Below are positions 2,279 to 55,387 of a stretch of 64,000 nucleotides of DNA, in pieces (position 1 is the stretch's first letter; every line of letters starts with the position of its first letter). This DNA comes from Podarcis melisellensis (taxonomy: Eukaryota), in assembly GCA_964234715.1 (NCBI GenBank), contig OZ174275.1. One strand, 5' to 3'. The notes beneath the pieces are model-generated. The model was not told where the DNA came from. It saw only the letters and a list, made by a program, of their open reading frames with translations, and searched no databases. A program made the translations under genes and the position numbers.

Positions 2279-2877
2279 GGGGAAAAAATCTATGCTGGTG
2301 TGTGTGTGTGTGTGTAAGAAAGCCACCTTCCAAAATATGAAGTACACTCAAATTTTATTTTGGGAAATAAATAAATGCTTTCATGGAAATGTTAATCATG
2401 TCAGCCTTAGCAATTTGTAACAGCTTTTAACTTGTGTCCTGTGGCCAAAGAAACCCATACACTCATGAAAACCAGTTCCTAATGTGTGTGGCAGTGGTGG
2501 GGGCTGCAGCTGCTGGGCTGCAGCTGCTGCAGGTCTGGCCTTCCATTAGGCAGTGACAATTGTCTCAGGTGCCGGAGAAATGCCTCCACCAGCAGACTAG
2601 CTGTGGTGTGTGGCTCTCCTGTGTACTTGCCCCACCCACTTGCCTCATTCTGGGGGAAATGGTTCTTCCTCAGAGTGAGGCATTGTGCTTTAGGTGGCCT
2701 AAGAAGATGCTTGCCTTACCACTACATCTCCCCTGTGGCTAGCAGCAGCAGCAGCAACAACAACAACAAGCACTCACACTTTACATTGTGGGTGCCCTTT
2801 GCAAGATTGTGCATGGTGCTACAGTTTCCACAGAACTTACTGGCAATCAGGGACTGGTCTGCCTCTCAGTGTTAATT

Positions 2878-3614
2878 TTTGGAGGTTCACGCCCAACTTC
2901 AGTAGTCAAGTTTCATTGCTGGGAGGTGGGGCCAGTCCCATATATATAAGGCGGTGGAGCTGACAGTATCCAGGCGGTCAGCTTAGGAGATTCACCCTCC
3001 TTACGCTCCCTTAGTTTAATGTTTTCTTGTTTGCAGGATAACTTTTTCTTCCTTTTTAGCGGGAGCAGCTACGGTCTATGACTGGTTGCTGTTGAAGGAC
3101 CGGGAATAAATTTTTCCTGCATTGGCAGGTTTTGTCTTCCATAGCAATTCGTCACAACTTTAGTGGTTTATGGCCTTGGGTGGAATCCTTTAGTCTTTTC
3201 TTCCCTATAATGGGGGGTGGGGGTGACTCACCCCCCTGTGATGGCGATTCCAGGGTCTCCTCTTAAAAGGGGTTATATAATGGGTGTCACTGGCCATACA
3301 CTGAAAGGTTGTCAGTGAACTACCCTGCGTGTGGGGATATGGGCTTGGCTGCCTGCTACACTTATGTCTCGCAGAGCACCCCCATATCCCATTTACCCTG
3401 ATGAGCCCCAGTTCCCCCCAGCTGGGGGGCTGGGAGGGATACATGCCCAAGGCCTAAGCTAAGGTCTTCCTATATTCGGAAGTTTAATAAAGTTGTGGCC
3501 TAATTTTAATTCCATATAACCTTGTCAGAGTCTTTATTCTTTCCTTATGATCCCTGGGGGCTAGGGCTGTCACTGCCTGGTCACGCAACAACAACAGCAA
3601 CAACAGCAACAACA
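2878..3614 (+). mobile_element. Unclassified ORF-less, highly self-complementary element (LTR-like or DIRS/Ngaro-like terminal repeat, or non-autonomous retroelement) with CAA/CAG tail
   Basis: GC-richer block flanked by GTTAATT direct repeats (2871-2877 / 3615-3621); TATATATAA near 2941-2949; AATAAA 3486-3491; ends GGTCACG followed by (CAA/CAG)n; several nested inverted repeats. Confidence 0.55.
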
Positions 3615-6869: not shown

Positions 6870-7092
6870 TTAAGAATCCAAAGACATTGGATTCTTATCT
6901 CATTATACATGACAAAGCCATTTTTCACCTTCTCACCCCTTGCTTTTTCCTGTAAGACCTATTGCAGTCGTTAAGAGTCGTCAACAGGCTCATCACAGCT
7001 ATCTGCCAATCACCCATTCCCACCATCCTTCTGAGTAATACCCCTCCCCACCTTCTCACTATATAGAAGGGTCTGGAAACTTCTGTTTCAGT

Positions 7093-7130
7093 GTATCTGA
7101 AGAAGTGTGCGTGCACACGAAAGCTCATAC
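7093..7130 (+). ncRNA. Minimal type I hammerhead ribozyme in the Penelope pseudo-LTR
   Basis: GTAT-CTGAAGA-A-GTGTGC(GT)GCACAC-GAAA-GC-TC-ATAC: CUGANGA core, stem II, GAAA, palindromic AGCT stem III, UC cleavage site, GUAU/AUAC stem I. Confidence 0.8.
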
Positions 7131-7391
7131 CAAGAACTAACTTAGTTGGTCTTTAAGGTGCTACTGGAAGGAATTTTTTTTTGTTTTAACTAGAGAATGA
7201 CATTGTAAAATTCAAAGAAATGTGGATTTCAATTGATGACTGTGTTTCGGTTTGTGTACTGTTTCAGAAAGTGTGGATGAGGTAGGTTCACATTTAAATG
7301 CAAGCTAAATTGAATCTGTCCATCATCCATATCCTGAAGCCATCTGATACAGTGTGGGGAATTAAGAAAGATAGATCACAGTAGATCAGAG

Positions 7392-7455: not shown

Positions 7456-7896
7456 AAGGGGATCAAGCAAAGCCTCTGGGCTACACTGAATTTCCCCCTC
7501 CCATCCCCAGATACATCCAGTGGTCCTAGTGAACCATTTAAGTGATTCCAGCTTCTGTTATCCATTCTGGAGATTCAGTTGAGTAGAAATTTTATTCTTT
7601 AGGCAGAAGGATTTCACTCTGCCAAAATTCAATGAAATACAATGCAGGTGTGACTGAAGAATTCAGTCTTTGTAAATTCCATATGAACTTACCGGATTTC
7701 CTTCTCATCTGATTTTTAACTTCTCTCAATGCTGGGACACGGTTTAAAAAATGAATCAAAAATACGCTAAAATTCTGAGAAAACAAATGTGTTCAAAATA
7801 TGTGTTTAACTGCGTATTGAAATCTGATTTATTTATTTATCAGTGCAGATCATTTTAGGCAAGTTAGGGCCTAAAATGTGAGATAGAACTGATTTA

Positions 7897-8133
7897 TGTT
7901 AAGTTGTGGGTGAACATATCAGACGACACAGCAATTCTTCAAACAGCTCTTGTTTATTCACAGAACTGAACTGAAGGGTTCAGTCAGCCTGCTTATATAG
8001 AGCTCCAGTACAACGTTACTGTAACAACTTTCTATAACTATCCAATCACTGAACGTCACTTTCAATCCCTTATTTGCATAACTATCTACAGTATCCCCCT
8101 GCTGGCCCAGGGTGAGAACTTCAGTACATAACA
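7897..8133 (-). mobile_element. Solo LTR (237 bp; Gypsy/BEL-like) with 5-bp TSD
   Basis: Termini TGTTA...TAACA; TSD ATTTA at 7892-7896 and 8134-8138; on the minus strand, octamer ATGCAAAT, then TATATAA, then AATAAA in the expected order. Confidence 0.85.
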
Positions 8134-9133
8134 ATTTATGAATGAACACGGGCAAAAGTAATGCAGATACCACATAGATTTCTTTGCCCATCCCTAGGAG
8201 AATCCATCTATGGCATCACAAAGTGAGTCAGAGGAACAGGCTGTCCTTAGGGGACAATGGGAAGGAAATGAAATGCGGAGGTGATGTAGCAGGAACAAGA
8301 AACAGCTCTTTGAATGCTGCAGACCTGCAAACCAGGTTCTCCATTCTAGAAGGTGGTCCCTAGGATCTTAATCTGACCACACCAATTGTACAAAAGACAA
8401 AAGCTTTCTGCTGACCAGAAGTCCGCACCCTAGATTAATAATAAAGCTAGCTGTCATGCCAAGAACAAGGTCCTTGTAATGTTTCTACAATGTTGGAAAG
8501 TATAGTAAATCATCTGAATCTGTTTACAGGAACAGAATTATATCTTTGTTAATAGAGTGATCGGTGTTCCATCCTTATTAAGATGTTTTCTGGCACAACA
8601 CTACTGTATGCGATCACCCTTCCTGAGTTCTTTAAAAACTTTGCAAATACGCCAACATACAAGCACCCATTAATGTGCCCATTGTCCAGTCTAAACAGAA
8701 CACCATGCAACCCATCACAGCTTCTCTAGGAGCCAGTTCTATATGTTATAGCTGCCATGCATCACCACATGCAGCAGTTGCACAATGTAGAGCAGCCTGC
8801 TGTGTAAATCAAACACAACTTGTGGAAATCTTCCATGTCACCCCTAGGCTTGAATGCCATGGTGATGTTTCTGAATGTGAATATATTTGAAAAAAATAGT
8901 ATTTACCTGTTGTGTAACTATCTTAGGTAGGATCCATATGAATAGTAAGTATGAATTAAAATGAATAAATTCTTGGAATTTATGATGAAGTGAACCATGG
9001 AAGGGCTACGATGCATTTGCTGCAAGAGACAAAAAAGGACAAATCCTTAACCTTTGATGGGGGGAATATGATCAGAATGTTATTAACAGGGATTGCAGGC
9101 GCTGGATGGGATCCATGGCAGACAAGCATTTCA

Positions 9134-9619
9134 TATCAGGCTTGAGGAATCTTCTCCCGCCCCCTGTTGGCACCAAGAGGCAGGGACGAAACAAGAAAGT
9201 TATTACGTGTGATTTATTCAGTCATCACAGTAAAAGTCAAAGACTTCCGGTCATTCCTCCATTATGGAGTTGCTCACAGTGAACTCCTCCCCCTTCCCTC
9301 TCTAGCAACAACACCTGCTTCTACGATGTCTGTCAGTGAACAATTGTCTCTGTGCTCTTTGTTCTAGCGAACACCGCGTTTTGGGAGAAGGGGGGTTGGG
9401 TACGCTGTCCAGTGACATGTCAGCTAGCTGTTCTGTCTCCCCTCCTCCTCCGCCTCCTCCTCCTAACACAGCTTAACTCTGCTGTTCACCTGCCTCTGAG
9501 CTGCTATCTTCCTCAAAGCCCTGCTGTAATTCGAGACTGCCTTCTTCTTCCCTGGAAGCTACAGGAAAAGGGGAGTGGGCCTTCACCATTCCTCCTCCTC
9601 TTCAATACAATCCCTGACA
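9134..9619 (-). mobile_element. Solo LTR (486 bp; Gypsy-like) with 5-bp TSD
   Basis: Termini T(A)TCAGG...CCTGACA (one substitution from TGTCAGG); TSD TTTCA at 9129-9133 and 9620-9624; minus-strand AATAAA at 9213-9218; purine-rich U3-like region on the minus strand. Confidence 0.8.
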
Positions 9620-10669
9620 TTTCAGGACCAACATCAGTTACCACACTATATATATTTCTTGTAGGAATCCACTGGTTCTTGTTCAGTATGCTGTTGAGCA
9701 CAACAGCCCATCGTTCTAGGGTGCATCCAACAATGTCAGGTTTGCGATGACAAAGCAGTTGATCCCAACAATTAGAGGTGTTGGGTAAATACTGCTGAGA
9801 TGACTTGATGGGGAGAAATTTGTGAAATTGTCCTAGCTTGAATTCTCAAAACTTAAAGCAAAACAGCTAGTTAACCTAACAAGAGATACTCTTGAATTAG
9901 TGGGCTTCAGAAACAATGTGTAGAAGAAGAATTGCATTTAGTAAGGTGAAATTTAACAGCATGGCCTTAAGATTATGTAACTGATCGTTTAATACAGAAA
10001 TGGGAAAAGATTCAACATTTTGAAAATAGGGTTTTTTAAAAAATCAATTCTAAATTTTGAAGCACTGTGAAATTTAATTTCAGTGGATCCTTCTTTTGGA
10101 GCATCAGACCATGGGACTGGGGCCCATGATTTGAGCATGCAGGAAAGGAGAAGTCACAATGGGGCCCCAAGTAAAAGAAAGTTTGGGAAAGCCATAATCC
10201 TGGTGATTGTGGAAATAAAGCACTTTCTGAATTGTTAGCAGAATTATGGGATGCAAAGAGAAAGTTAGGAAATAGGAGAGAAAGGTAGACAATGATGAGA
10301 TAGCAGTCGCTACAAGACCATTGGTGTCAATCCTTGGTACTCAACAGTAATGAGAAATGGCATTGACGAGAAATGGCAACACATTATGATAAGGGCGCAT
10401 CCATACACTGCAGGAATTCAGTCAGGTACCTCTTCCCCTGAGACAACCTCATCCTCAGCTCAATAATCTCATGCTCTACATGTGTTCATCCCCTGTGAGT
10501 TTGGAGCACAGCAGAGACTAATTGAGGCTGAAATAGAGGCTGCCAGTGTTGTACTGGGTGCCCATTTTCCCACAGAAGAATTCTTGGAACCTGCAGGGTC
10601 TCCCACCCACCTGCTGAAATTAGTCTTGAAAGACATATTCTGTTGTAGCCAATATAATAGTTTGGGGTG

Positions 10670-10784
10670 TATGCCCTGTTTAGGGAAGTTTTTAATGTTT
10701 GATGTTTTATTGTGTTTTTAATATCCTGTTGTAAGCTGCCCAGAGTGGCTGGGGAGGCCTGATCAGATGGGCGGGGTATAAGTA

Positions 10785-10842
<58 letters not shown>

Positions 10843-10843
10843 T
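10670..10843 (+). mobile_element. L2 LINE 3' end with (TAT)n tail
   Basis: TGTAAGCTGCCCAGAGTGGCTGGGG...AGATGGGCGGGGTATAAGTAA followed by about 18 TAT units. Confidence 0.7.
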
Positions 10844-11145
10844 ATGTGGGTGCCCATAATAGTTTCTTAAGTTTACTAACGTGTCCATGGGTCCAAAAAG
10901 GCTGGCGACCCCTGGTCTGAAATGGCCACCACACTCTGAGATTATGCACAGGCCATATTGAGTTCCTAATACCTATGATTAGGAACTTATGTGTGGACTG
11001 AACTGCTCTACTTGTCCTGGATAAAGAAGCATTTGGGCAAATTTATGTTCACTTACTGTAAAACCTACATTGAGTCATGCTGATCGGCTACATTCTGAAC
11101 AGATGTCCATGAAGAGACATAGCCCATGGAATCTGTGTTCCATTT

Positions 11146-11405
11146 GACACCAGTGTCGTGTAGTGGTTAAGAGCGGTGGACTCATAATCTGGTGAACTGG
11201 GTTCACTTCCCCGCTCCTCCACATGCAGCTGCTGGGTGACCTTGGGTTAGTCACACTTCTCTGAAGTCTCTCAGCCTCACTCACCTCACAGAGTGTTTGC
11301 TGTGGGGGAAAGGAAGGGAAAGGAGATTGTTAGCCGCTTTGAGACTCCTTAGGGTAGTGATAAAGCGGGATATCAAATTCAAACTCCTCCTCCTCTTCTT
11401 CTTCT
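11146..11405 (+). mobile_element. tRNA-derived SINE with L2-like tail (Squam3-like), near full length
   Basis: Pol III A box (GTGTAGTGG) and B box (GGGTTCACTTCC); core TGGGTGACCTTGGG; tail TTAGCCGCTTTGAGACTCCTT...AAAGCGGGATATC plus (CTC/CTT)n. Confidence 0.85.
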
Positions 11406-11726
11406 ATACTGTATCTTCAGAGTGATCCCCCAAAAAAGGATGGGGTTTCAGGATCATTGCACAAAAGAATATACAGAAAGGACGTTTTTCACATATGATC
11501 TGCAACTGCCCATTGCCCTTAGTTTTTAGTTTTCAAAAATGATTACATTATGCACCTCCAAAATCCTTGCAGAGCTAAGTGTGATGCAGTTTGGCAGGCT
11601 CCAAACTTCAGCTACAAATGGCGTGTATTTGTAAGCTTTGGTGTGTCTCTTCTGCAACATTTCCATTCTTCACACTCCTCCGCTGGCATCGTCCTGCCTG
11701 ACAGTCAAATCAACTGTCACAGAAAG

Positions 11727-11977
11727 NNNNNNNNNNNNNNNNNNNNNNNNNNNNNNNNNNNNNNNNNNNNNNNNNNNNNNNNNNNNNNNNNNNNNNNNNN
11801 NNNNNNNNNNNNNNNNNNNNNNNNNNNNNNNNNNNNNNNNNNNNNNNNNNNNNNNNNNNNNNNNNNNNNNNNNNNNNNNNNNNNNNNNNNNNNNNNNNNN
11901 NNNNNNNNNNNNNNNNNNNNNNNNNNNNNNNNNNNNNNNNNNNNNNNNNNNNNNNNNNNNNNNNNNNNNNNNNNNNN
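11727..11977. other. N gap (251 nt)
   Basis: Run of N. Confidence 1.
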
Positions 11978-12854
11978 ATATTACTCGGTGTGCATATGCT
12001 GAAGTCATTAGGTTTTACACTGTGCTCAAATGATAGCGGGTTTCATATTCCCATTGAGTCGCTTTCAGTAGTCAATGCTTCTGGGTCAAGTCGCCTGACA
12101 TGGGGGTGATGCGTCTCAATACAGGGGATGAGAAAACTTCTTTAAGCAGCTTTGCACAATGACAAGTGCACTTCCCTCCACAGCTTTATTATGCAATATA
12201 AGCATCGGGTCATAGAACAGTCCGCAGTGTAGGGATCAAATAGAACTAAACTAAAAAAAAAAAAAAGATTTAAGGCTAAATTAGGTGATTTAAACATTTT
12301 CCTTTAAGCTTATACAAAATCCCCTAGCTATAAAATCCTGCATAATGCTCTCCTGGATTTATATGTAGTTGGCATATAAATTTTAACTACTTCAGAGCTG
12401 GCACTAGCTTTTAAGTGGAGAAGCTGCGTTAGTTGCTCAGGCAAACAGCTCAGGTGGCTCTGATTTAGTTAATTAACCTTCGTCAGCCAAATAAAAGAAA
12501 AGGGGGAGGGGATGAGGAAAGGCCCCTAAAACATTGCAAGTTCCCAAATAGATGGCTTAAAGTTTGCCTATTACTTGGCATGCGTCAAGCTAAATAAATT
12601 CGATAGCATAAGGGCGAGCAGTTAAAAACTAGAGATAAAGCCAATGAATTGGCTTGTAACTCACCCCAGATACTATTAAAAAAAGAAGGAGCCAGATATT
12701 CTCATATCCTATCCATTATTCAAGCAGCTTCTTCTGTTCCTGGGTGTCAGATGGGGAACTGATGAGTGTGTTCTGGTGAAGACAGTAAGCGGATGTTAAC
12801 TTCCCACTGAGAGAATTTCTCCAGGTCGTATAGAAAACGTTCTACTAATCATCC

Positions 12855-13125
12855 NNNNNNNNNNNNNNNNNNNNNNNNNNNNNNNNNNNNNNNNNNNNNN
12901 NNNNNNNNNNNNNNNNNNNNNNNNNNNNNNNNNNNNNNNNNNNNNNNNNNNNNNNNNNNNNNNNNNNNNNNNNNNNNNNNNNNNNNNNNNNNNNNNNNNN
13001 NNNNNNNNNNNNNNNNNNNNNNNNNNNNNNNNNNNNNNNNNNNNNNNNNNNNNNNNNNNNNNNNNNNNNNNNNNNNNNNNNNNNNNNNNNNNNNNNNNNN
13101 NNNNNNNNNNNNNNNNNNNNNNNNN
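12855..13125. other. N gap (271 nt)
   Basis: Run of N. Confidence 1.
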
Positions 13126-14659
13126 AATTTAACATTTCTCTTCTACCTTCTTTCCTAAGGGTGTCTTGTGATTTGTTATTCCAGTGCTGTGGCAACACTT
13201 AGTTACATACTGTAAATTGCCATGTTGCGGAATCGCCCAAAGTTTTTTAAATATAGGATTTAAAAAAAAAATGTGTGTCTTTATCTACTCCATCTATCCC
13301 AAAAGATAACAGAGTTAAATTGATTTCAAAAGAATAGTCAGCTGTTTCTACTGAATAAAAGAGCACAGTCAGGTGTATTTTACCCTTATTTTTATTTTTG
13401 AAAGAGTTACTAGAAGGCCAATCTGACACATAAGGGAGCCCACACAAAAATAAAAGAGTCATCCTGATAGATTCCTGAGACACAATTGCCTATTAATTTC
13501 AACACTGCATATTTTAATACATATTCACTTTCCACATGTCAATGTCATTAAATGATGGAGTGTCCATCTAGCAACGCTTGTTTGTATCCACAAACAATTT
13601 CAAGTGGTAAAGAAAAGGATGTGCTAGCTTGCTCCATTGATTAAACAAAGTACCTGGGCCCCATCACTTATCCCATTCCCTTTGATTAATTATTTTATAG
13701 GTTCAATTTCGCTATGATTTTGGATTAAAATTAATGATCAGGTGGTGCCAGGAGATAAGTGGAAAGCAATGGCAGAAGGGTCAAAGCTGGCTTTTAGCTT
13801 AATATTTTGCACATGAAGCTCCTCAATACAATATTTTGGCGATACTCTTATTTCCTTAATAGTGCTAATCTAATTACTGTAGTATGTAAAAACAGACAAA
13901 GGAGGTGTACAGTTATGATTTATGAAGAGGCGCATTGACCTTTTCTAGTTTAAATACCTTTGTTGGTGTCACTGGTGCAATCAAATTCTATTGGAACTGA
14001 TGACAAGCACTGCTGGCATTTATATTTTCAATAAATAATGGAATAACCCAAACAATTTATTTGGAAATAATGTCTTGGGAGAAGGCTGATAATGCTCTCG
14101 CCCTTTAAATCTTGTTTTTCTTTTTCTTTTTAAAGCCTTCCATTCTTGTGACTTGTGTTCTGGATTCCTTTAGTTTTTAGTGGGCAAAAATCTATAAACC
14201 ACTTACTCTGCTTTCAGAACCTAACAGGGAGAGCAGCCACTTGGGGGAGAGATTTGGAGTAGAGAAATGAGGAAAGAACGAGCTAAACGATCTTCCCTTT
14301 ATTCTGTACCTACCCAAGTGGATTTTCATTTAAAAGCAAATAATGTCGAAGCTACTTTGCACATGTGTGTGATACATGTAGCTAAGTCTTTAGAATGTAG
14401 AACCCTCCACTCTACATAAACTCAAAGTCTTTTTCAGGGAAACGGTACCCCATATAGAATGTTGACTAACTGTTAGGTAGGAGGAGGAAGAAAGAAAACT
14501 GGGGAGGAGAGGTAGAGTGGAATGACATTTTGTTACAGATCTCACTTGTGAATTTTGAATTGGCAAAGAATTATTCCATGGAGATCTGCAGATTCAGAAT
14601 GAGAAGATACAAATAAACTGCAAGATTCCTGCTGTGTATTTTGTCTATACCTAGTCAGT

Positions 14660-15060
14660 ATAAAGGAAGACTGATCACCGAAGAATTGATGCTTTTGAAT
14701 TATGGTGCTGGAGGAGACTCTTGAGAGTCCCATGGACTGCAAGAAGATCAAACCTATCCATTCTGAAGGAAATCAACCCTGAGTGCTCACGGGAAGGACA
14801 GATCGTGAAGTTGAGGCTCCAATACTTTGGCCACCTCATGAGAAAAGAAGACTCCCTGGAAAAGACCCTGATGTTGGGAAAGATGGAGGGCACAAGGAGA
14901 AGGGGACGACAGAGGACGAGATGGTTGAACAGTGTTCTCAAAGCTACCAACATGAGTTTGAGGAAACCACGGGAGGCAGTGGAAGACAGGAGTGCCTGGC
15001 GTGCTCTGGTCCATGGGGTCAGGAAGGGTCGGACACGGCTAAACGACTAAACAACAACAA
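14660..15060 (+). mobile_element. Bov-B (RTE clade) LINE, 5'-truncated 3' fragment
   Basis: ORF 14721-15050 RVPWTARRSNLSILKEINPECS...LQYFGHLMR...EKTLMLGKMEGTRRRGRQRTRWL...WRALVHGV is the RTE RT C-terminus; (CAA)n tail. Confidence 0.95.
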
Positions 15061-15935
15061 GTAATATAAAGCACCATTTAGAAACAGGTGATAAACTGAT
15101 TTCAGTAGTTTTATGATTACATTGGGCATGCTTTTAGTGAGAAGATGACTGTCTTGCTTATGCACTTGTCCAAGGGCCAAATCTGTGTTCTGCTGGCTGT
15201 GTTTCTTTTTGCTGGCTCTTTTAATACTGCTTTCATCAGAGCCCACTTCTGTTTTTTTAACCTGTGTGCTCTCTGTAATCCATATCTCACAGAAGGCCAT
15301 ATATTTAAATTAAAACTCTTTATTAATCTAATTGATTGTATGAAATGCATATGTAAGAGGATTGTGTTTTTGTTTTTTAAAAACCCTCTCAGACACCGTG
15401 GTTCGATATCTATCGTGAAATATTAAAAGCAACTTGTGGAAAACTGGAAAGCAGATGACACTTTGGGACTGGAGGAAAAGTAGATTTTAAAGTAACATGG
15501 GCACACAATTATTGCAATCTGTCATTAAGTGGCTCTAATGTGTGCCTACCATTTCACAGGAAGTTTTGAATTTGTATCAAAACTAGTGGGGGTGGGATTT
15601 AGGGAAGTAGATTCTTCAAGAACTCAAAACTTTTGCTATTAATCAGACAAGAAAGTGGCTAAAAAAATCCCCCTTTCTTATTAATACTAGTTTCCAGGAC
15701 TCTCCAGTGAAGTCAGATGTTAGTATATTCTGGGAAGCACTTCACAGAACACATACTTAGAATTATGGAATTGGTTACCCCAAAAAAGAATAACTTCCAC
15801 CAGTTTGTATGGCTTTAAAAGAGGGTTGTACATATTCAACGTTATTATCATTTGATTAATTTATTGATCTCTTTTGCAAGGCCATTTAAAATCATACAAT
15901 AGAAAGAACTAAAGATAGGTTTTTAAATAATGTAA

Positions 15936-22353: not shown

Positions 22354-22656
22354 GGAGTGAGCTCCCATTGCTCTGTCCCAGCTCCTGCCAATCCAGCTAT
22401 TCAAAAGCACGCCAGTGCAAGTAGAGAAATAGGTACCGGTGCAGGTAAATAGCATTTCCGTGCGCTCTGGCTTCTGTCGCGGTGTCCTGTTGCACCAGAA
22501 GCAGTTTAGTCGTGCTGGACACATAACCCAGAAAGCTGTCTGTGGACAAACACCAGCCCCCTCAGCCTGAAAAGTGAGATGAGTGCCACAACCCCATAGT
22601 TGCCTTTGACGGGAGTTAACCATCCAGGGGTCCTTTACCTACCTACCTACCTTTAC
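22354..22656 (+). mobile_element. Sauria SINE (longer subfamily), 5'-truncated
   Basis: GTGAGCTCCCATTGCTCTGTCCCAGCTCCTGCCAA...CCAGGGGTCCTTTACCTACCTACCTACCTTTAC. Confidence 0.9.
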
Positions 22657-29427: not shown

Positions 29428-29675
29428 NNNNNNNNNNNNNNNNNNNNNNNNNNNNNNNNNNNNNNNNNNNNNNNNNNNNNNNNNNNNNNNNNNNNNNNNN
29501 NNNNNNNNNNNNNNNNNNNNNNNNNNNNNNNNNNNNNNNNNNNNNNNNNNNNNNNNNNNNNNNNNNNNNNNNNNNNNNNNNNNNNNNNNNNNNNNNNNNN
29601 NNNNNNNNNNNNNNNNNNNNNNNNNNNNNNNNNNNNNNNNNNNNNNNNNNNNNNNNNNNNNNNNNNNNNNNNNNN
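29428..29675. other. N gap (248 nt)
   Basis: Run of N. Confidence 1.
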
Positions 29676-39761: not shown

Positions 39762-40060
39762 TGAAGATTCAGGGCAGACAAAAGAAAGTACTCCTTCACA
39801 TAGTGCATGGAATAAACCATGGAATAAACTTCTGCAAAATGTAATAGTGGTCACCAACTTGTATGACTTTAAAAGAAGAATAGGCTTCTTTTAAAGCTAC
39901 CAGGGGCTGTTATGGTGACAAAGTTTTTCCTCCACTATGGAGGGCAGTATGCCTCTGAATGTCAGGTGCTAGGAATTGCAAGTGGGGAAAGTGCTGTTGT
40001 GTCCTCTAGTATGTTGGAACAGAAGGGACTTTGGCCTCATCCAGCTGGACTCTTCTAATG
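39762..40060 (+). mobile_element. CR1 LINE 3' fragment (ORF2 end plus 3' UTR), degenerate
   Basis: AGATTCAGGGCAGACAAAAGAAAGTACTCCTTCACA...ACCAACTTGTATGACTTTAAAAGA reads as RFR.DKRKY.FT...TNL..FKR; 3' UTR matches fragments at 45510, 51540 and 60800. Confidence 0.7.
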
Positions 40061-40066
40061 TACATG

Positions 40067-40442
40067 CACAGGTGGCGCTGTGGTCTAAACCACTGAGCCT
40101 CTTGGGCTTGCCAATCAGAAGGTCGGCAGTTCGAATCTGCACAACAGGGTGAGCTCCTGTTGCTCTGTCCCAGCTTCTGCGAACCTTGCTGTTCAAAAGC
40201 ACGCCAGTTCAAGTAGATAAATAGGTACCGCTGCAGTGGGAAGGTAAACGCCATTTCTGTGCGCTCTGGCACTCGTCACAGTCCTCTGTATGCCAGAAGC
40301 AGTTTAGTCATGCTGGCCACATGACCCAGAAAGCTGTCTGTGGACAAACGCCTGCTCCCTCAGCCTGAAGTAAGATGAGCACCACACCTCATAGTCACCT
40401 TTGACTGGACCTAACTACCCAGGGGTCCTTTACCTTTATCTT
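40067..40442 (+). mobile_element. Sauria SINE, full length (longer subfamily)
   Basis: A box GGTGGCGCTGTGG, B box AGTTCGAATC, core, and ACCTTT tail; probable TSD TACATG (40061-40066 / 40443-40448). Confidence 0.93.
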
Positions 40443-40583
40443 TACATGGCTTTGCCAACTTCTGCTCTTATGTAGCTATTCCTGAGTTTTCTCAGACAAA
40501 GCAAAGCCCCACCCACCTTTGCCTTGTTAGAAAATGTCCCTCCTTGAATGTAATAGAGTCTTACAGTTTCCCATTTCTTTCAG

Positions 40584-40621
40584 GTTTACCTAGATCTGAT
40601 GTACAAAACCCGTTTGATCTG
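40584..40621 (+). other. Candidate 38-nt internal exon of an unidentified host gene
   Basis: Acceptor TTTCCCATTTCTTTCAG, donor CTG|GTAAGC; two open frames ((G)LPRSDVQNPFDL or VYLDLMYKTRLI); no homology recognised. Confidence 0.3.
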
Positions 40622-41369
40622 GTAAGCATTTGAACTGCATGTCATGTTGAGAGAGGACAGAGCTTTCCTGTTCACAGCAAAGCACAGAAAAAGGATAGTC
40701 ACTGAATGGAATGATTACGGCCTGCTCATAACAGCCAAACACAATATGACATTCGTAAGTAGTCGTACTGCCTCAGTAAAACCAGGTTGTCTGTTCACCT
40801 TTCATTATAGCACAAATATTTAACATAGCTTTAGGTTATCCAGCTTTATTTAGTCGATGACAGAAAGACTTTTTTCCTCCTTTTTTTCCTGTTGTGGATC
40901 AAGGCAACCGCCTCCAGAATTGATCTCATTAGCAAAGTTTCTAAAGGAAAGGAGATTAGGGGAAATCACTGATTTTCCTGACTCACACTGGTATTTCAGT
41001 GGCAGGGAATTCAGAGTTTCATCCTCCTCCTAGGCATTGGTTTCAGTTCACATTTTTTTACTATTGTTCAACCCTTAGGTAATCCTAAAGACAAGGGATA
41101 AGTGACCTCTCTCTCTTTTATATATTCATATTCAGAGTAGCCACCTCCAGGCTGTTGCTCTATTTCAAGCTTTCCGTGTGACCGTCATAAAATGAGTTCA
41201 TGGAAAAGAGCCAGAATCACTCCTTAGGAACATCATGGTGGTCCTGGTTTAAAACAACAATGTGAATCCATGGAGGGAAATTTGATGTTTTATGGCTTTA
41301 TCCTTTGCATTTCAAAATTCTTTAAAGGTGAAGTCCATTCATTTTCACCATAGGGCCCTCCTGCTCGCT

Positions 41370-41840
41370 TGTGGAGCCCTGAAAAACAGAGACAGAGAAT
41401 GAATGGAATGAAATTATGGGCTTCCTTTGTTAGGCGGAGATTGCTGTTTGTATGTGGGCGGAAATGGCATTGGGCAGGATCAACATAAATGGAGGGTATA
41501 AGGGGCCTGAAGGGAGGATTGACCATGACACCCCCAAGCTTGACATATCTGCCTGGTAGGAATCTGCACCCTGGTCCTGCAGTGAGACCTTGCTTGCTTG
41601 GCTTGCACCACGGGAAGGTGCAACACTGGCTGACTCTCACAGAACAGGTTTGGAGGGGGGTCCAAACCCGGCAGATCCATGCCATCAACATGGGGCTTGT
41701 GGAATGATGAACTGATCCTTGGACCCAATGCCATGCCAACCCTTTCCCTGCCTACTGCTGTCAATAAAGATTTGGCCTGCTTTCCCCCCCCCCCATCGGC
41801 ATTGTACCGTCTTGTTATTTTGCTGCTCCGATAGGTCACA
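41370..41840 (+). mobile_element. Unclassified ORF-less, highly self-complementary LTR-like element
   Basis: TATAA 41497-41501; AATAAAGATTTGGCC from 41763; ends GGTCACA; at least six nested inverted repeats; 5' boundary uncertain; no TSD found. Confidence 0.5.
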
Positions 41841-42943
41841 TAATGTGCCTGCCTGGGCATACAAAATTTTATAAACGAACTGTGTTCTTAAACCAGCATT
41901 GGTAAGTAACATTTGTGTGAATGGCATCTGGCACTGAATGGCTGGAATGTTCCAATGTCACAGAGTGTGTGACAAGGGTCTTGGTAGAAAAAGGCCTTAG
42001 ATGCTTTGGTGGCAGAAAGGGGCAGTGCCAGTGAATTGAACTGGGATCTTTAGAACCAGAGTTCTAAGTTACAAATCATGTTTTAAAGAACATCGGAATC
42101 TAGGCCAGGATTGTCTATGCTGACTGGCAGTAGCGGAGGGACTTGAGAACTGCATGGACAGTGATGCAAGGAAGAGGCAATTGGCAAAAAATGTTTCCCA
42201 CTCTTTCCTTCCACAAGTAGGAATATCCACTGGATCTTGGCGCCTTCTGTGAAGAGGAGTGCAAGTCTTGATGCAACCCCAAAGATTAATTTCCTATATT
42301 CCACAGACTTTTTGCAGTGACATCTGTTTGTTACCAATCAACTGAGCAATTTAAATGGCATTTTGACAGACCAACAAAAATGCAAATCGGACAGGATGTG
42401 TTAGGATGTGGACATGTGAAAGCATCCTTAGATGATTCATATATATATATATTAACAAATATGTTTTTATCTTCCCATCCCAAGGCTTTGGGGAGTAGGT
42501 GAAGAGAGACTGAGCACTTTCTTACCTTGTTTGTTCATTTCTAGCCAGCAGACTACTTTTCCAGCCCCTGAGATTTGAGAATAACTGAAGACAATTGCTC
42601 CGAAATAGGAGAACTGGCACAATAAGAACATACGGATTGGAGCACGTTGTTCAATTTGTGTATTTCTGTATCTAGTGAGTTGCATCCTAAAAGGCTGTAA
42701 GAGATAATGCAACCCAAACAACATATTCAGAATGCAGACCATTGAAACGAAAGCTAAAGTGAGTGATGCTTTTGGAAAACATTTTCTGTGGTGCTACAAT
42801 GTCTCACCTTCCTCTTTTTGGCACATTTTTAAAAAGATACTGGTAATAATAACATTGAGTTTTTGAATGAATTTCCCTTCTTAATGTGATACATTTTAAA
42901 CACCAGTTATTTTTAGGTCAATTCAAGGTGTTATTACTTGCTT

Positions 42944-43698
42944 GTTGTTGTTTAGTCGTTTAGTCGTGTCCGACTCTTCGTGACCCCATGGACCAAAGAA
43001 CGCCAGGCACCTCTGTCCTCTACTGCCTCCCGCAGTTTGGTCAGACTCATGCTGGTAGCCTCGAAAACACTATCCAACCATCTCGTCCTCTGTCGCCCCC
43101 TTCTCCTTGTGCCCTCCATCTTTCCCAACATCAGGGTCTTCTCCAGGGAGTCTTCTCTTCTCATGAGGTGGCCAAAGTATTGGAGCCTCAGCTTCACAAT
43201 CTGTCCTTCCAGTGAGCACTCAGGGTTGATTTCCTTCAGTATGGATAGGTTTGATCTTCTTGCAGTCCATGGGACTCTCAAGAGTCTCCTCCAGCACCAT
43301 AATTCAAAAGCATCAATTCTTCGGCGATCAGCCTTCTTTATGGTCCAGCTCTCACTTCCATACATCACTACTGGGAAAACCATAGCTTTAACTATACGAA
43401 CCTTTGTTGGCAAGGTGATGTCTCTACTTCTCAAGATGCTGTCTAGGCCTGTCATTGCCCTTCTCCCAAGAAGCAGGCGTCTTTTAATTTCGTGGCTGCT
43501 GTCACCATCTGCAGTGATCATTGAGCCCAAGAAAGTAAAATCTCTCACTACCTCCATTTCTTCCCCTTCTATTTGCCAGGAGGTGATGGGACCAGTGGCC
43601 ATGATCTTCGTTTTTTTGATGTTGAGCTTCAGACCATATTTTGCGCTCTCCTCTTTCACCCTCATTAAAAGGTTCTTTAATTCCTCCTCACTTTCTGC
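42944..43698 (-). mobile_element. Bov-B LINE 3' fragment with uninterrupted 237-codon RT C-terminal frame and 13-bp TSD
   Basis: ORF 42952-43665 ..KEESAKYGLKLNIKKTKIMA..FTFLGS..YGSESWT..YFGHLMRR..WRSLVHGVTKSRTRLND; (CAA)n tail; TSD TTATTACTTGCTT at 42931-42943 and 43710-43722. Confidence 0.96.
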
Positions 43699-45507
43699 TT
43701 ACAACTTGCTTATTACTTGCTTACAACTCCCTAAAGAATTTGAGACAGGATTATTTGAGAAACAAGCTCTCCCCTGCCCAGTCATTATGTTCAGTGCTAG
43801 TGGCCCTCCTCCTCCTACTCATAGGAGCTCCTACTATTCACCTTGGATTTACTATCAGTACAGGTTTCCGTGCTGTGGCCCCTTTAATGTATTAATTTGC
43901 TACCATCTGAAATAAGGAGTGCTCCAGAACACATACTCTTTCAGATGAATGCTTGTGCCCTTTTTACTTACCCAGGTCTTTTCCAATTGATCATCTTTTG
44001 CTATTTTACTGTTACGTTAGCATTTTTAGTCTCAATGTATACACAGTTTAGCTGCTACTTTTTTCTTTTATAATGTGAGAAGTTCATAAATCTTTTTTAT
44101 AATAAATAATAAAAGTTATGATTAGCAGACATAAAACACTAATAGCCCCCAAATGCCCACGTAAGTAAACAAGCTTAGTCCTGTGCTGTAAGTGTATGTG
44201 TGTGTGTGTTGTGGATGTGTGTGTTGTGGAAGGCTAATGCTGTGTGAACAGATGAACTATAAATAAAATATAATTCATTTATTACGCTAACAATAATTTT
44301 ATAATTGAGAGGGCTTTCTCAACAGTTGTGGCCAACTGTAACGGAAATGGTGTGTGTGTGTTTATGTGTGTGTTTGTGATTCCCTAATGGTTCAATCATT
44401 GTTCTCTCCAGGTTAGAATCCATGCAACTTTTTGAAAGTATACTTTTCTCACATGTCATCTATAAGGGGAGAAAAACCCTGGAATGTCAGGTTGTCCTAT
44501 TTGTGTAATTATATAATTTTGAGTGTTCCCTTTAAGGCTGTTATGGGAAACTTTCCTCCTCTCTTTCAGTGTTAGGTCTCAAAGTCACTAGAGTCAGAAT
44601 AGTTCATTTATACTTCAGAATGTTGGCCAGACAATGGCCCCAGGGTTACAAAGTGTATTATGGCAGAACAGAAACACAATTTTCTGGCTTCTGTTCTCTA
44701 ATTCATTTAATTAGGGGTTTTCTTCATTCTTCTGGGTTTGTCCTTTCACATTTAGGAAGTTTCTCTCCATAAAATACATCTCTATTCTCCCAAAGAAACA
44801 GAGATACATTTGTTGGAGGCATATATTATTGGACTTTTCCGTCTTGATTCCAAAATGTCACAAAATACTTTGCCCAAGGTTAACAGAGAGATTACTTTTG
44901 CCCATTAGTCCAGCCTACAGAAATGCACATAATCAATGCCTATAAGACTCTGATCATAGTTCTGTTTATTTTTATGAAGCACGAATATGCTCAAAAAGAA
45001 AATGCAAAATGAATGTAGATGTCACCAGGGAACTGCCTGAATTATATGATTTCCCAAGCTTTCTGTACTATGTTAAACTCAAAATAACATGGAAGAAATG
45101 TGCATGTCCTTCGTGGGGGGTGGGGGTCAAAATACAATTACTGTAGTCCATAAACTATATGGCTAGGCCTGGCTCATTCATTTTGAGTGGAGGGAGTAGG
45201 CCTACAGTTTTAAAAGGGATGAGTTAGGGTTAGAGTTAGAGGTGGTAGGAATGCCCATCATTACAGGTGACTAACTATTCAGTACAATCAATAGTTGTAC
45301 ACCTTACATAAGACCAACATTTTCTGTAGGCTCTGCCTCCTGATCTGTCCCCAAGCTCTGCAAGTTGTAGATATTCACCCTCCACCAAATTTAATGGAGC
45401 TTGGAAGAAACAGGGGAGCCAAAGGCACACCAAAATCCCCATACCATCAGGAACTGTTAGTATTTCGGTGTAGATTGGACTGTTCCATGGTGGAAAAGGC
45501 TATCATT

Positions 45508-55222: not shown

Positions 55223-55387
55223 NNNNNNNNNNNNNNNNNNNNNNNNNNNNNNNNNNNNNNNNNNNNNNNNNNNNNNNNNNNNNNNNNNNNNNNNNNNNNN
55301 NNNNNNNNNNNNNNNNNNNNNNNNNNNNNNNNNNNNNNNNNNNNNNNNNNNNNNNNNNNNNNNNNNNNNNNNNNNNNNNNNNNNNNN
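55223..55387. other. N gap (165 nt)
   Basis: Run of N. Confidence 1.

Follow-up and report, generated by a model that had tools for sequence, protein, structure and literature searches.

What occupies positions 41370-41840 of the 64,000-nucleotide stretch of DNA analysed here (the window), which looks like part of a squamate reptile genome? A sequence-only reading had seen in it a set of nested inverted repeats forming a rod, had grouped it with a second region of the window at 2878-3614 (element 1 below, the present locus being element 2), and had singled it out as the best candidate for something undescribed. The answer that emerges is an ordinary one, namely a decayed solo LTR or, failing that, an interspersed repeat of some other ordinary sort, and in either case a kind that is already well known: the locus shows no excess folding, some of its stems are broken among related copies, it has no match in Rfam and it is covered by almost no RNA. 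The supposed undescribed element is thus returned to routine repeat annotation, with its borders corrected to about 41409-41859.

A dispersed repeat unit with corrected borders

At about 41409-41859 the window carries a member of a dispersed repeat family. From three DNA runs (X1, X5 and X20, carrying three organism labels) and one bulk RNA run, contigs were mapped onto positions 39800-43800, and in all three DNA runs the summed contig depth over the unit was about 70-400 times that of its single-copy flanks. Across three bins spanning 41408-41809 the depth in X1 climbed from 5' to 3', from 2,844 through 7,661 to 15,583, and the profile over the unit in X5 and X20 was the same. Single-copy depth was found at 40470-41407 and 41944-42881 (about 35-54 in X1, two small blips apart), and the bin 41274-41407 was likewise at single-copy level, with 43.3 in X1, 15.9 in X5 and 105.7 in X20. 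The blips, at 42078-42211 (537 in X1) and 42346-42479 (140) against about 35-44 around them, are probably short old repeat fragments in otherwise single-copy DNA.

The borders follow from contig depth together with the ends of paralogue contigs. Several of these (n=5) start within 41409-41412, and two extend 116 and 69 letters past the 5' border without a match to the window; these unaligned overhangs indicate that 41409 is a genuine border of similarity. On the 3' side one paralogue contig ends at 41841 and another at 41859, both running on unaligned, and the likeliest end of the unit is 41859, within a range from 41840 to about 41863. The earlier borders of 41370-41840 were therefore misplaced: the unit, which we read as a solo LTR of 451 bp with TG...CA termini on the plus strand, starts at 41409 and probably ends at 41859, with 41840 as a possible alternative, and positions 41370-41408 belong to the single-copy flank.

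Paralogue contigs are 80-90% alike to the unit, with about 12-17% other letters in 11 contigs, which we summarise as a difference of about 15%. By summed word depth, a measure that does not equal copy number, the family comprises roughly a hundred copies or more in this genome and its close relatives; within the 64 kb, blastn (word size 7) found no second copy of either element. G+C content is 52% over a stretch of about 470 nt, and the CpG observed/expected ratio of the unit, 0.22, equals that of the flanks. In each of X1, X5 and X20 both junctions are spanned by near-identical contigs, so that the insertion is present at the orthologous site in all three organisms and is older than their split. 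If squamates are taken to substitute at 0.0013 per site per Myr, the value adopted in PMC13295347, a pairwise divergence of about 15% would place the age of the family very roughly at 50-100 Myr. Depth in the one bulk RNA run was at most 1 read across the unit, which amounts to almost no transcripts.

Anatomy of a likely solo LTR

We consider it likely, from its anatomy, that the stretch of about 41409-41859 is an old, decayed solo LTR of an LTR retroelement, whose parent may have been either an endogenous retrovirus or an element of the Ty3/gypsy type, since the observed anatomy fits both alike. The unit opens with TG (41409-41410, at the border given by the paralogue contigs) and closes with CA at 41858-41859, a further CA being present at 41839-41840; for the 41859 end, the complementarity of the termini is limited to these 2 bp (TG/CA). 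Its sole TATAA, at 41497-41501, is a candidate TATA box, and some copies of the family, in which 41487 is joined to 41580, lack 41488-41579 and hence the region of this candidate box. A single AATAAA at 41763, about 97 nt before the 3' end, lies in a putative poly(A) signal box, AATAAAGATTTGGCCT (41763-41778), which is common to element 1 (3486-3501). It is followed 40-65 nt behind by a GT-rich stretch (41800-41829, 65-70% G+T) that is a candidate downstream polyadenylation element and has its equivalent in element 1 at 3520-3559. The last 11 letters of the unit, CTGCCTGGGCA (41849-41859), end in CA, are also found in element 1 (3573-3583) and are a candidate integrase recognition end. The conserved motifs of LTRs, in retroviruses as well as in animal Metaviridae, are TG...CA, AATAAA and a GT-rich stretch downstream of it, the TATA box being less conserved (PMC3601003), and the agreement of the unit's TG...CA, TATAA, AATAAA and GT-rich stretch with this set is what argues for the LTR reading. 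Since the DNA on either side is single-copy, the unit has no internal provirus sequence next to it.

A target-site duplication of 4-6 bp is absent, as seen when ATGGAA (41403-41408) is set against TACAAA (41860-41865) or TAATGT (41841-41846), and the alternative ends 41838, 41840, 41859 and 41863 gave no match either. This absence weakens the LTR assignment, and loss of the duplication by decay or by recombination between different proviruses is possible. A different pair of termini, TGTGACC at 41177-41183 with GGTCACA at 41834-41840, was considered and rejected, since 41177-41408 is single-copy and inverted repeats of 7 letters at such a distance are expected by chance.

Several searches for coding or related sequences were negative within their scope. 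A protein-word search for relatives of the 149-codon ORF on the minus strand at 41290-41739 gave one candidate and nothing significant, and a Pfam comparison of the window's ten longest ORFs, among them this one and two over 42952-43915, gave no family and revealed no retroviral gene fragment. Neither an exact 21-mer, sought in metagenome contigs, nor the two-motif pattern described below, sought with a gap of variable length in viral and metagenome contigs, led to a paralogue or a full-length element; these collections probably hold no DNA of the organism, and the results carry no information on rarity. A scan for bacterial promoters and terminators found nothing, which is irrelevant for an element of this kind.

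If the unit is a solo LTR, its history would be the usual one: a provirus would have integrated at this site, and its two LTRs would later have recombined so that one LTR remained. Such an LTR would bring its own promoter (TATA) and its own poly(A) signal (AATAAA with the GT-rich element), and its TG...CA ends would be the ones recognised by the integrase. The copy would then have decayed, with its CpG ratio of 0.22, its distance of about 15% from its paralogues, a target-site duplication presumably gone and no sign of transcription.

A 3' module shared with element 1

The sequence-only reading had placed the two elements in one class conserved in structure and in 3' motifs. The part of this proposal that concerns the motifs is probably right, two of them being common to both elements, while the part that concerns structure did not hold; its members are most plausibly LTRs of related retroelements, which are of a known kind. 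It had also noted little other primary similarity between the elements, and we confirm this: outside the two motifs, alignment is at chance level. The best local alignment of elements 1 and 2 scores 13 against 12.2 +/- 1.4 for shuffles, blastn (word size 7) finds no match between them, and the 70 nt between the two motifs as well as the 120 nt upstream of AATAAA align only at the level of chance.

The 64 kb contain exactly two occurrences of the first shared motif, AATAAAGNNNTGGCC, at 3486 and at 41763, both without a mismatch, where 0.55 occurrences would be expected with one mismatch allowed. The second, CTGCCTGGNCA, has exactly two matches in the window (3573-3583 and 41849-41859; 0.16 expected). 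Both lie on the plus strand in identical order, 87 nt apart in element 1 and 86 nt apart in element 2, and the second is terminal in each case, abutting a (CAA)n/(CAG)n run in element 1 and coinciding with the end of the furthest-reaching paralogue contig in element 2. Together they delimit the 3' part of element 1 at 3486-3583 (plus strand). The motifs were chosen after the fact, and by a rough estimate a match of 10 of 11 letters on the same diagonal and at the terminus has a chance probability of order 1e-3, so that coincidence is unlikely. The motif pair originally pointed out, AATAAAG(n)3TGGCC (41763-41777) followed by GGTCAC (41834-41839), is indeed present, but GGTCAC is not equally spaced, its distance from the preceding AATAAAG being 71 nt in element 2 and 93 nt in element 1.

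Two LTR-like elements that otherwise cannot be aligned thus have in common a poly(A) box and, at a fixed distance from it, a terminal 11-mer. Element 1 (about 2870-3583) is accordingly best viewed as a second LTR, from a related lineage, and the poly(A) box at a fixed distance from the putative integrase-recognition end would correspond to a U5 of constant length in both elements. The shared module, AATAAAGNTNTGGCCT-N(60-85)-CTGCCTGGNCA, may be useful for grouping, by sequence search, the LTR families of one retroelement lineage in this genome.

With regard to the limits of element 1, candidates for its 5' border are the TG at 2870 and position 2770, directly after a (CAG)4(CAA)5 run, and those for its 3' end are 3583-3587. 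A similar (CAA)n/(CAG)n run stands past its 3' end, and element 1 may have inserted into a microsatellite or into a Bov-B-type tail.

Other interspersed repeats and the surrounding sequence

A second explanation, which we regard as unlikely though by no means negligible, is that the unit is not an LTR and represents instead the conserved 3' region of a non-LTR retrotransposon or its SINE-like passenger, or some non-autonomous, unclassified element. The growth of depth from 5' to 3' is the behaviour of 5'-truncated LINE families, but the 5' border at 41409-41412 is common to several paralogue contigs, which is not expected from random 5' truncation. Immediately after element 1 comes a (CAA)n-type run, and tails of this type are those of Bov-B LINEs in reptiles (PMC13295347); against this, (CAA)n is also found upstream of element 1 (2755-2769) and may be an array predating its insertion, and element 2 itself has neither a microsatellite nor an A-rich tail. 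The absence of a target-site duplication, a terminal inverted repeat limited to TG/CA and the restriction of the likeness between elements 1 and 2 to a 3' module, as in LINE/SINE partners, would suit this explanation, whereas the joint presence of TATAA, AATAAA, a GT-rich stretch and TG...CA corresponds to the LTR set (PMC3601003). The solo LTR therefore remains our preferred reading of the unit.

Elsewhere in the window there are sequences that resemble repeats of these other kinds. One is 42942-43700 on the minus strand, which terminates in ...GACTAAACGACTAAACAACAACAA and whose summed depth runs into the millions; it has the appearance of a Bov-B-like LINE 3' end with a (CAA)n tail. In reptiles, Bov-B LINEs have (CAA)n at their ends and are confined to squamates (PMC13295347), which would agree with the squamate look of the window. 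Two long overlapping ORFs on opposite strands lie in this region, at 42980-43915 on the plus strand (311 aa) and at 42952-43665 on the minus strand (237 aa), and neither has a Pfam match. A tRNA-headed SINE-like repeat (GGTGGCGCTGTGGTCTAAACCACTGAGCC...) is present at 40071-40440 and at 22357-22571, with a summed contig depth of millions and abundant RNA reads, and its contigs show 80-95% likeness on both strands. Many contigs join the 3' end of this SINE-like repeat at 40437 straight to the (TTG)n end at 42942, and these joins probably reflect other genomic sites at which such elements adjoin Bov-B-type (CAA)n tails. Stretches of N, 1,115 letters altogether, interrupt the window at five places, 2099-2278, 11727-11977, 12855-13125, 29428-29675 and 55223-55387.

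Folding and stem conservation

The proposal that the unit belongs to an undescribed class of rod-folding RNAs (retrozyme-, viroid- or ribozyme-like, possibly circular), in which structure and not sequence is conserved, is very improbable in the light of its folding and of its variation among copies. The stems on which it was built are real, since all seven of the complementary pairs listed earlier, including an 11-bp perfect inverted repeat, are found exactly where they had been placed; these inverted repeats are not above chance, however, and the locus has no genuine rod-like structure. The minimum free energy (MFE) of 41370-41840 is -147.4 kcal/mol against -159.8 +/- 5.9 in 100 dinucleotide-preserving shuffles (z +2.08), every one of which folds at least as well. 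Compared with shuffles, the minus strand of the same stretch gives z +0.32 and the corrected unit 41409-41859 gives z +1.20, and against a genomic background regressed on G+C (128 windows of 471 nt each, non-overlapping, from the same 64 kb) the MFE residual has z +0.58. Folding is thus at or below chance level on both strands, with both choices of borders and also relative to the genomic background. Complementary pairs of 7-mers number 14 in the element, compared with 11.3 +/- 4.4 in dinucleotide shuffles (149 of 500 reach 14) and 14.7 +/- 12.7 in the background windows, and the 11-bp perfect inverted repeat is matched in 27 of the 500 shuffles and in 15 of the 128 background windows (12%). 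Nested inverted repeats picked by hand from a stretch of 470 nt with 52% G+C are to be expected by chance, and should be read with that caution.

The two elements had been described as having the same rod-like architecture, and here they part company. At 3075-3585, element 1 does fold better than its shuffles (MFE -196.1 against -170.4 +/- 6.7, z -3.85, no shuffle as good), which would favour a structured class, whereas element 2 shows no excess folding at all. The excess in element 1 is due at least partly to local G/C-rich palindromes, for example GGGGGGTGGGGGTGACTCACCCCCC and CCCCCCAGCTGGGGGG.

Variation among family copies agrees with the folding energies. The outermost arm of the supposed rod, GGAGC at 41373-41377, sits in the unique flank and hence outside the mobile unit. 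At 41620 the letter in most family contigs is T (in X1, 62 contigs and 5,205 of a depth of 5,443), so that the central C41606-G41620 pair of the hairpin TTGCACC/GGTGCAA is broken, and the best-supported differences include no change at 41606 that would compensate. The copies that join 41487 to 41580 have, through this 92-nt deletion, lost the arm ATCTGCC (41547-41553) and kept its partner GGCAGAT. In contig differences, which make for a limited test, the stems are therefore neither conserved nor compensated among copies.

Comparison with Rfam, whose ribozyme models had been suggested earlier as a check, gave no match to a ribozyme or any other RNA family. At gathering score the whole window has 0 matches, and at E<=1 the region 41200-42000 has only a chance match to a lncRNA, with 15 bits against a gathering score of 50. 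At the same E<=1, element 1 has nothing except a chance match of 16 bits outside 3075-3585, and a candidate minimal hammerhead at 7093-7130 has no match (6900-7350), although stems as short as these may escape the models. A still bolder version, in which transcripts of both families would fold into rods and be processed as a new non-coding, possibly circular retroelement RNA, with AATAAAG..TGGCCT and CTGCCTGGNCA as the processing signals, is hardly credible.

Comparison with known systems

Retrozymes and viroid-like circular RNAs resemble the unit in being non-coding, a few hundred nucleotides long and repeated in the genome, but the unit differs from them in that it has no ribozyme motif, no excess base pairing, no conserved stems and no transcripts. 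Among LTR retroelements, the anatomy that we see does not separate the LTRs of animal Ty3/gypsy elements (Metaviridae) from retroviral ones, and nothing in it is specific for Metaviridae.

The LTRs of endogenous retroviruses (ERVs) differ from the unit in some respects. The unit is without a detectable target-site duplication and its inverted termini measure 2 bp. Its 5' end, TGAAATTAT, matches the gammaretroviral 5' motif TGWAGNMRR only in part, and its 3' end, ...GGGCA, is not NNYNACA, a motif that the alternative end ...GGTCACA at 41840 does match (PMC3601003). The putative R, from the TATA to the poly(A) site, would be about 260 nt, which is long and well above the 70 bp of ERV gammaretroviruses (PMC3601003).

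The likeness to the solo LTRs of vertebrate ERVs extends over most of the layout. The unit shares with them the TG...CA termini, an AATAAA followed by a GT-rich stretch and a length of about 450 bp, and, at the level of the family, many dispersed copies with discrete borders, no adjacent internal sequence, and a U3 that is more variable than R-U5, with which the rise in depth towards the 3' part agrees; a candidate TATA box can be set beside theirs. By layout, the LTRs of class I (gamma/epsilon-like) ERVs come nearest: the position of AATAAA, about 97 nt from the end of the unit, would fit a short R tail followed by a U5 some 75 nt long, the arrangement of murine leukaemia virus.
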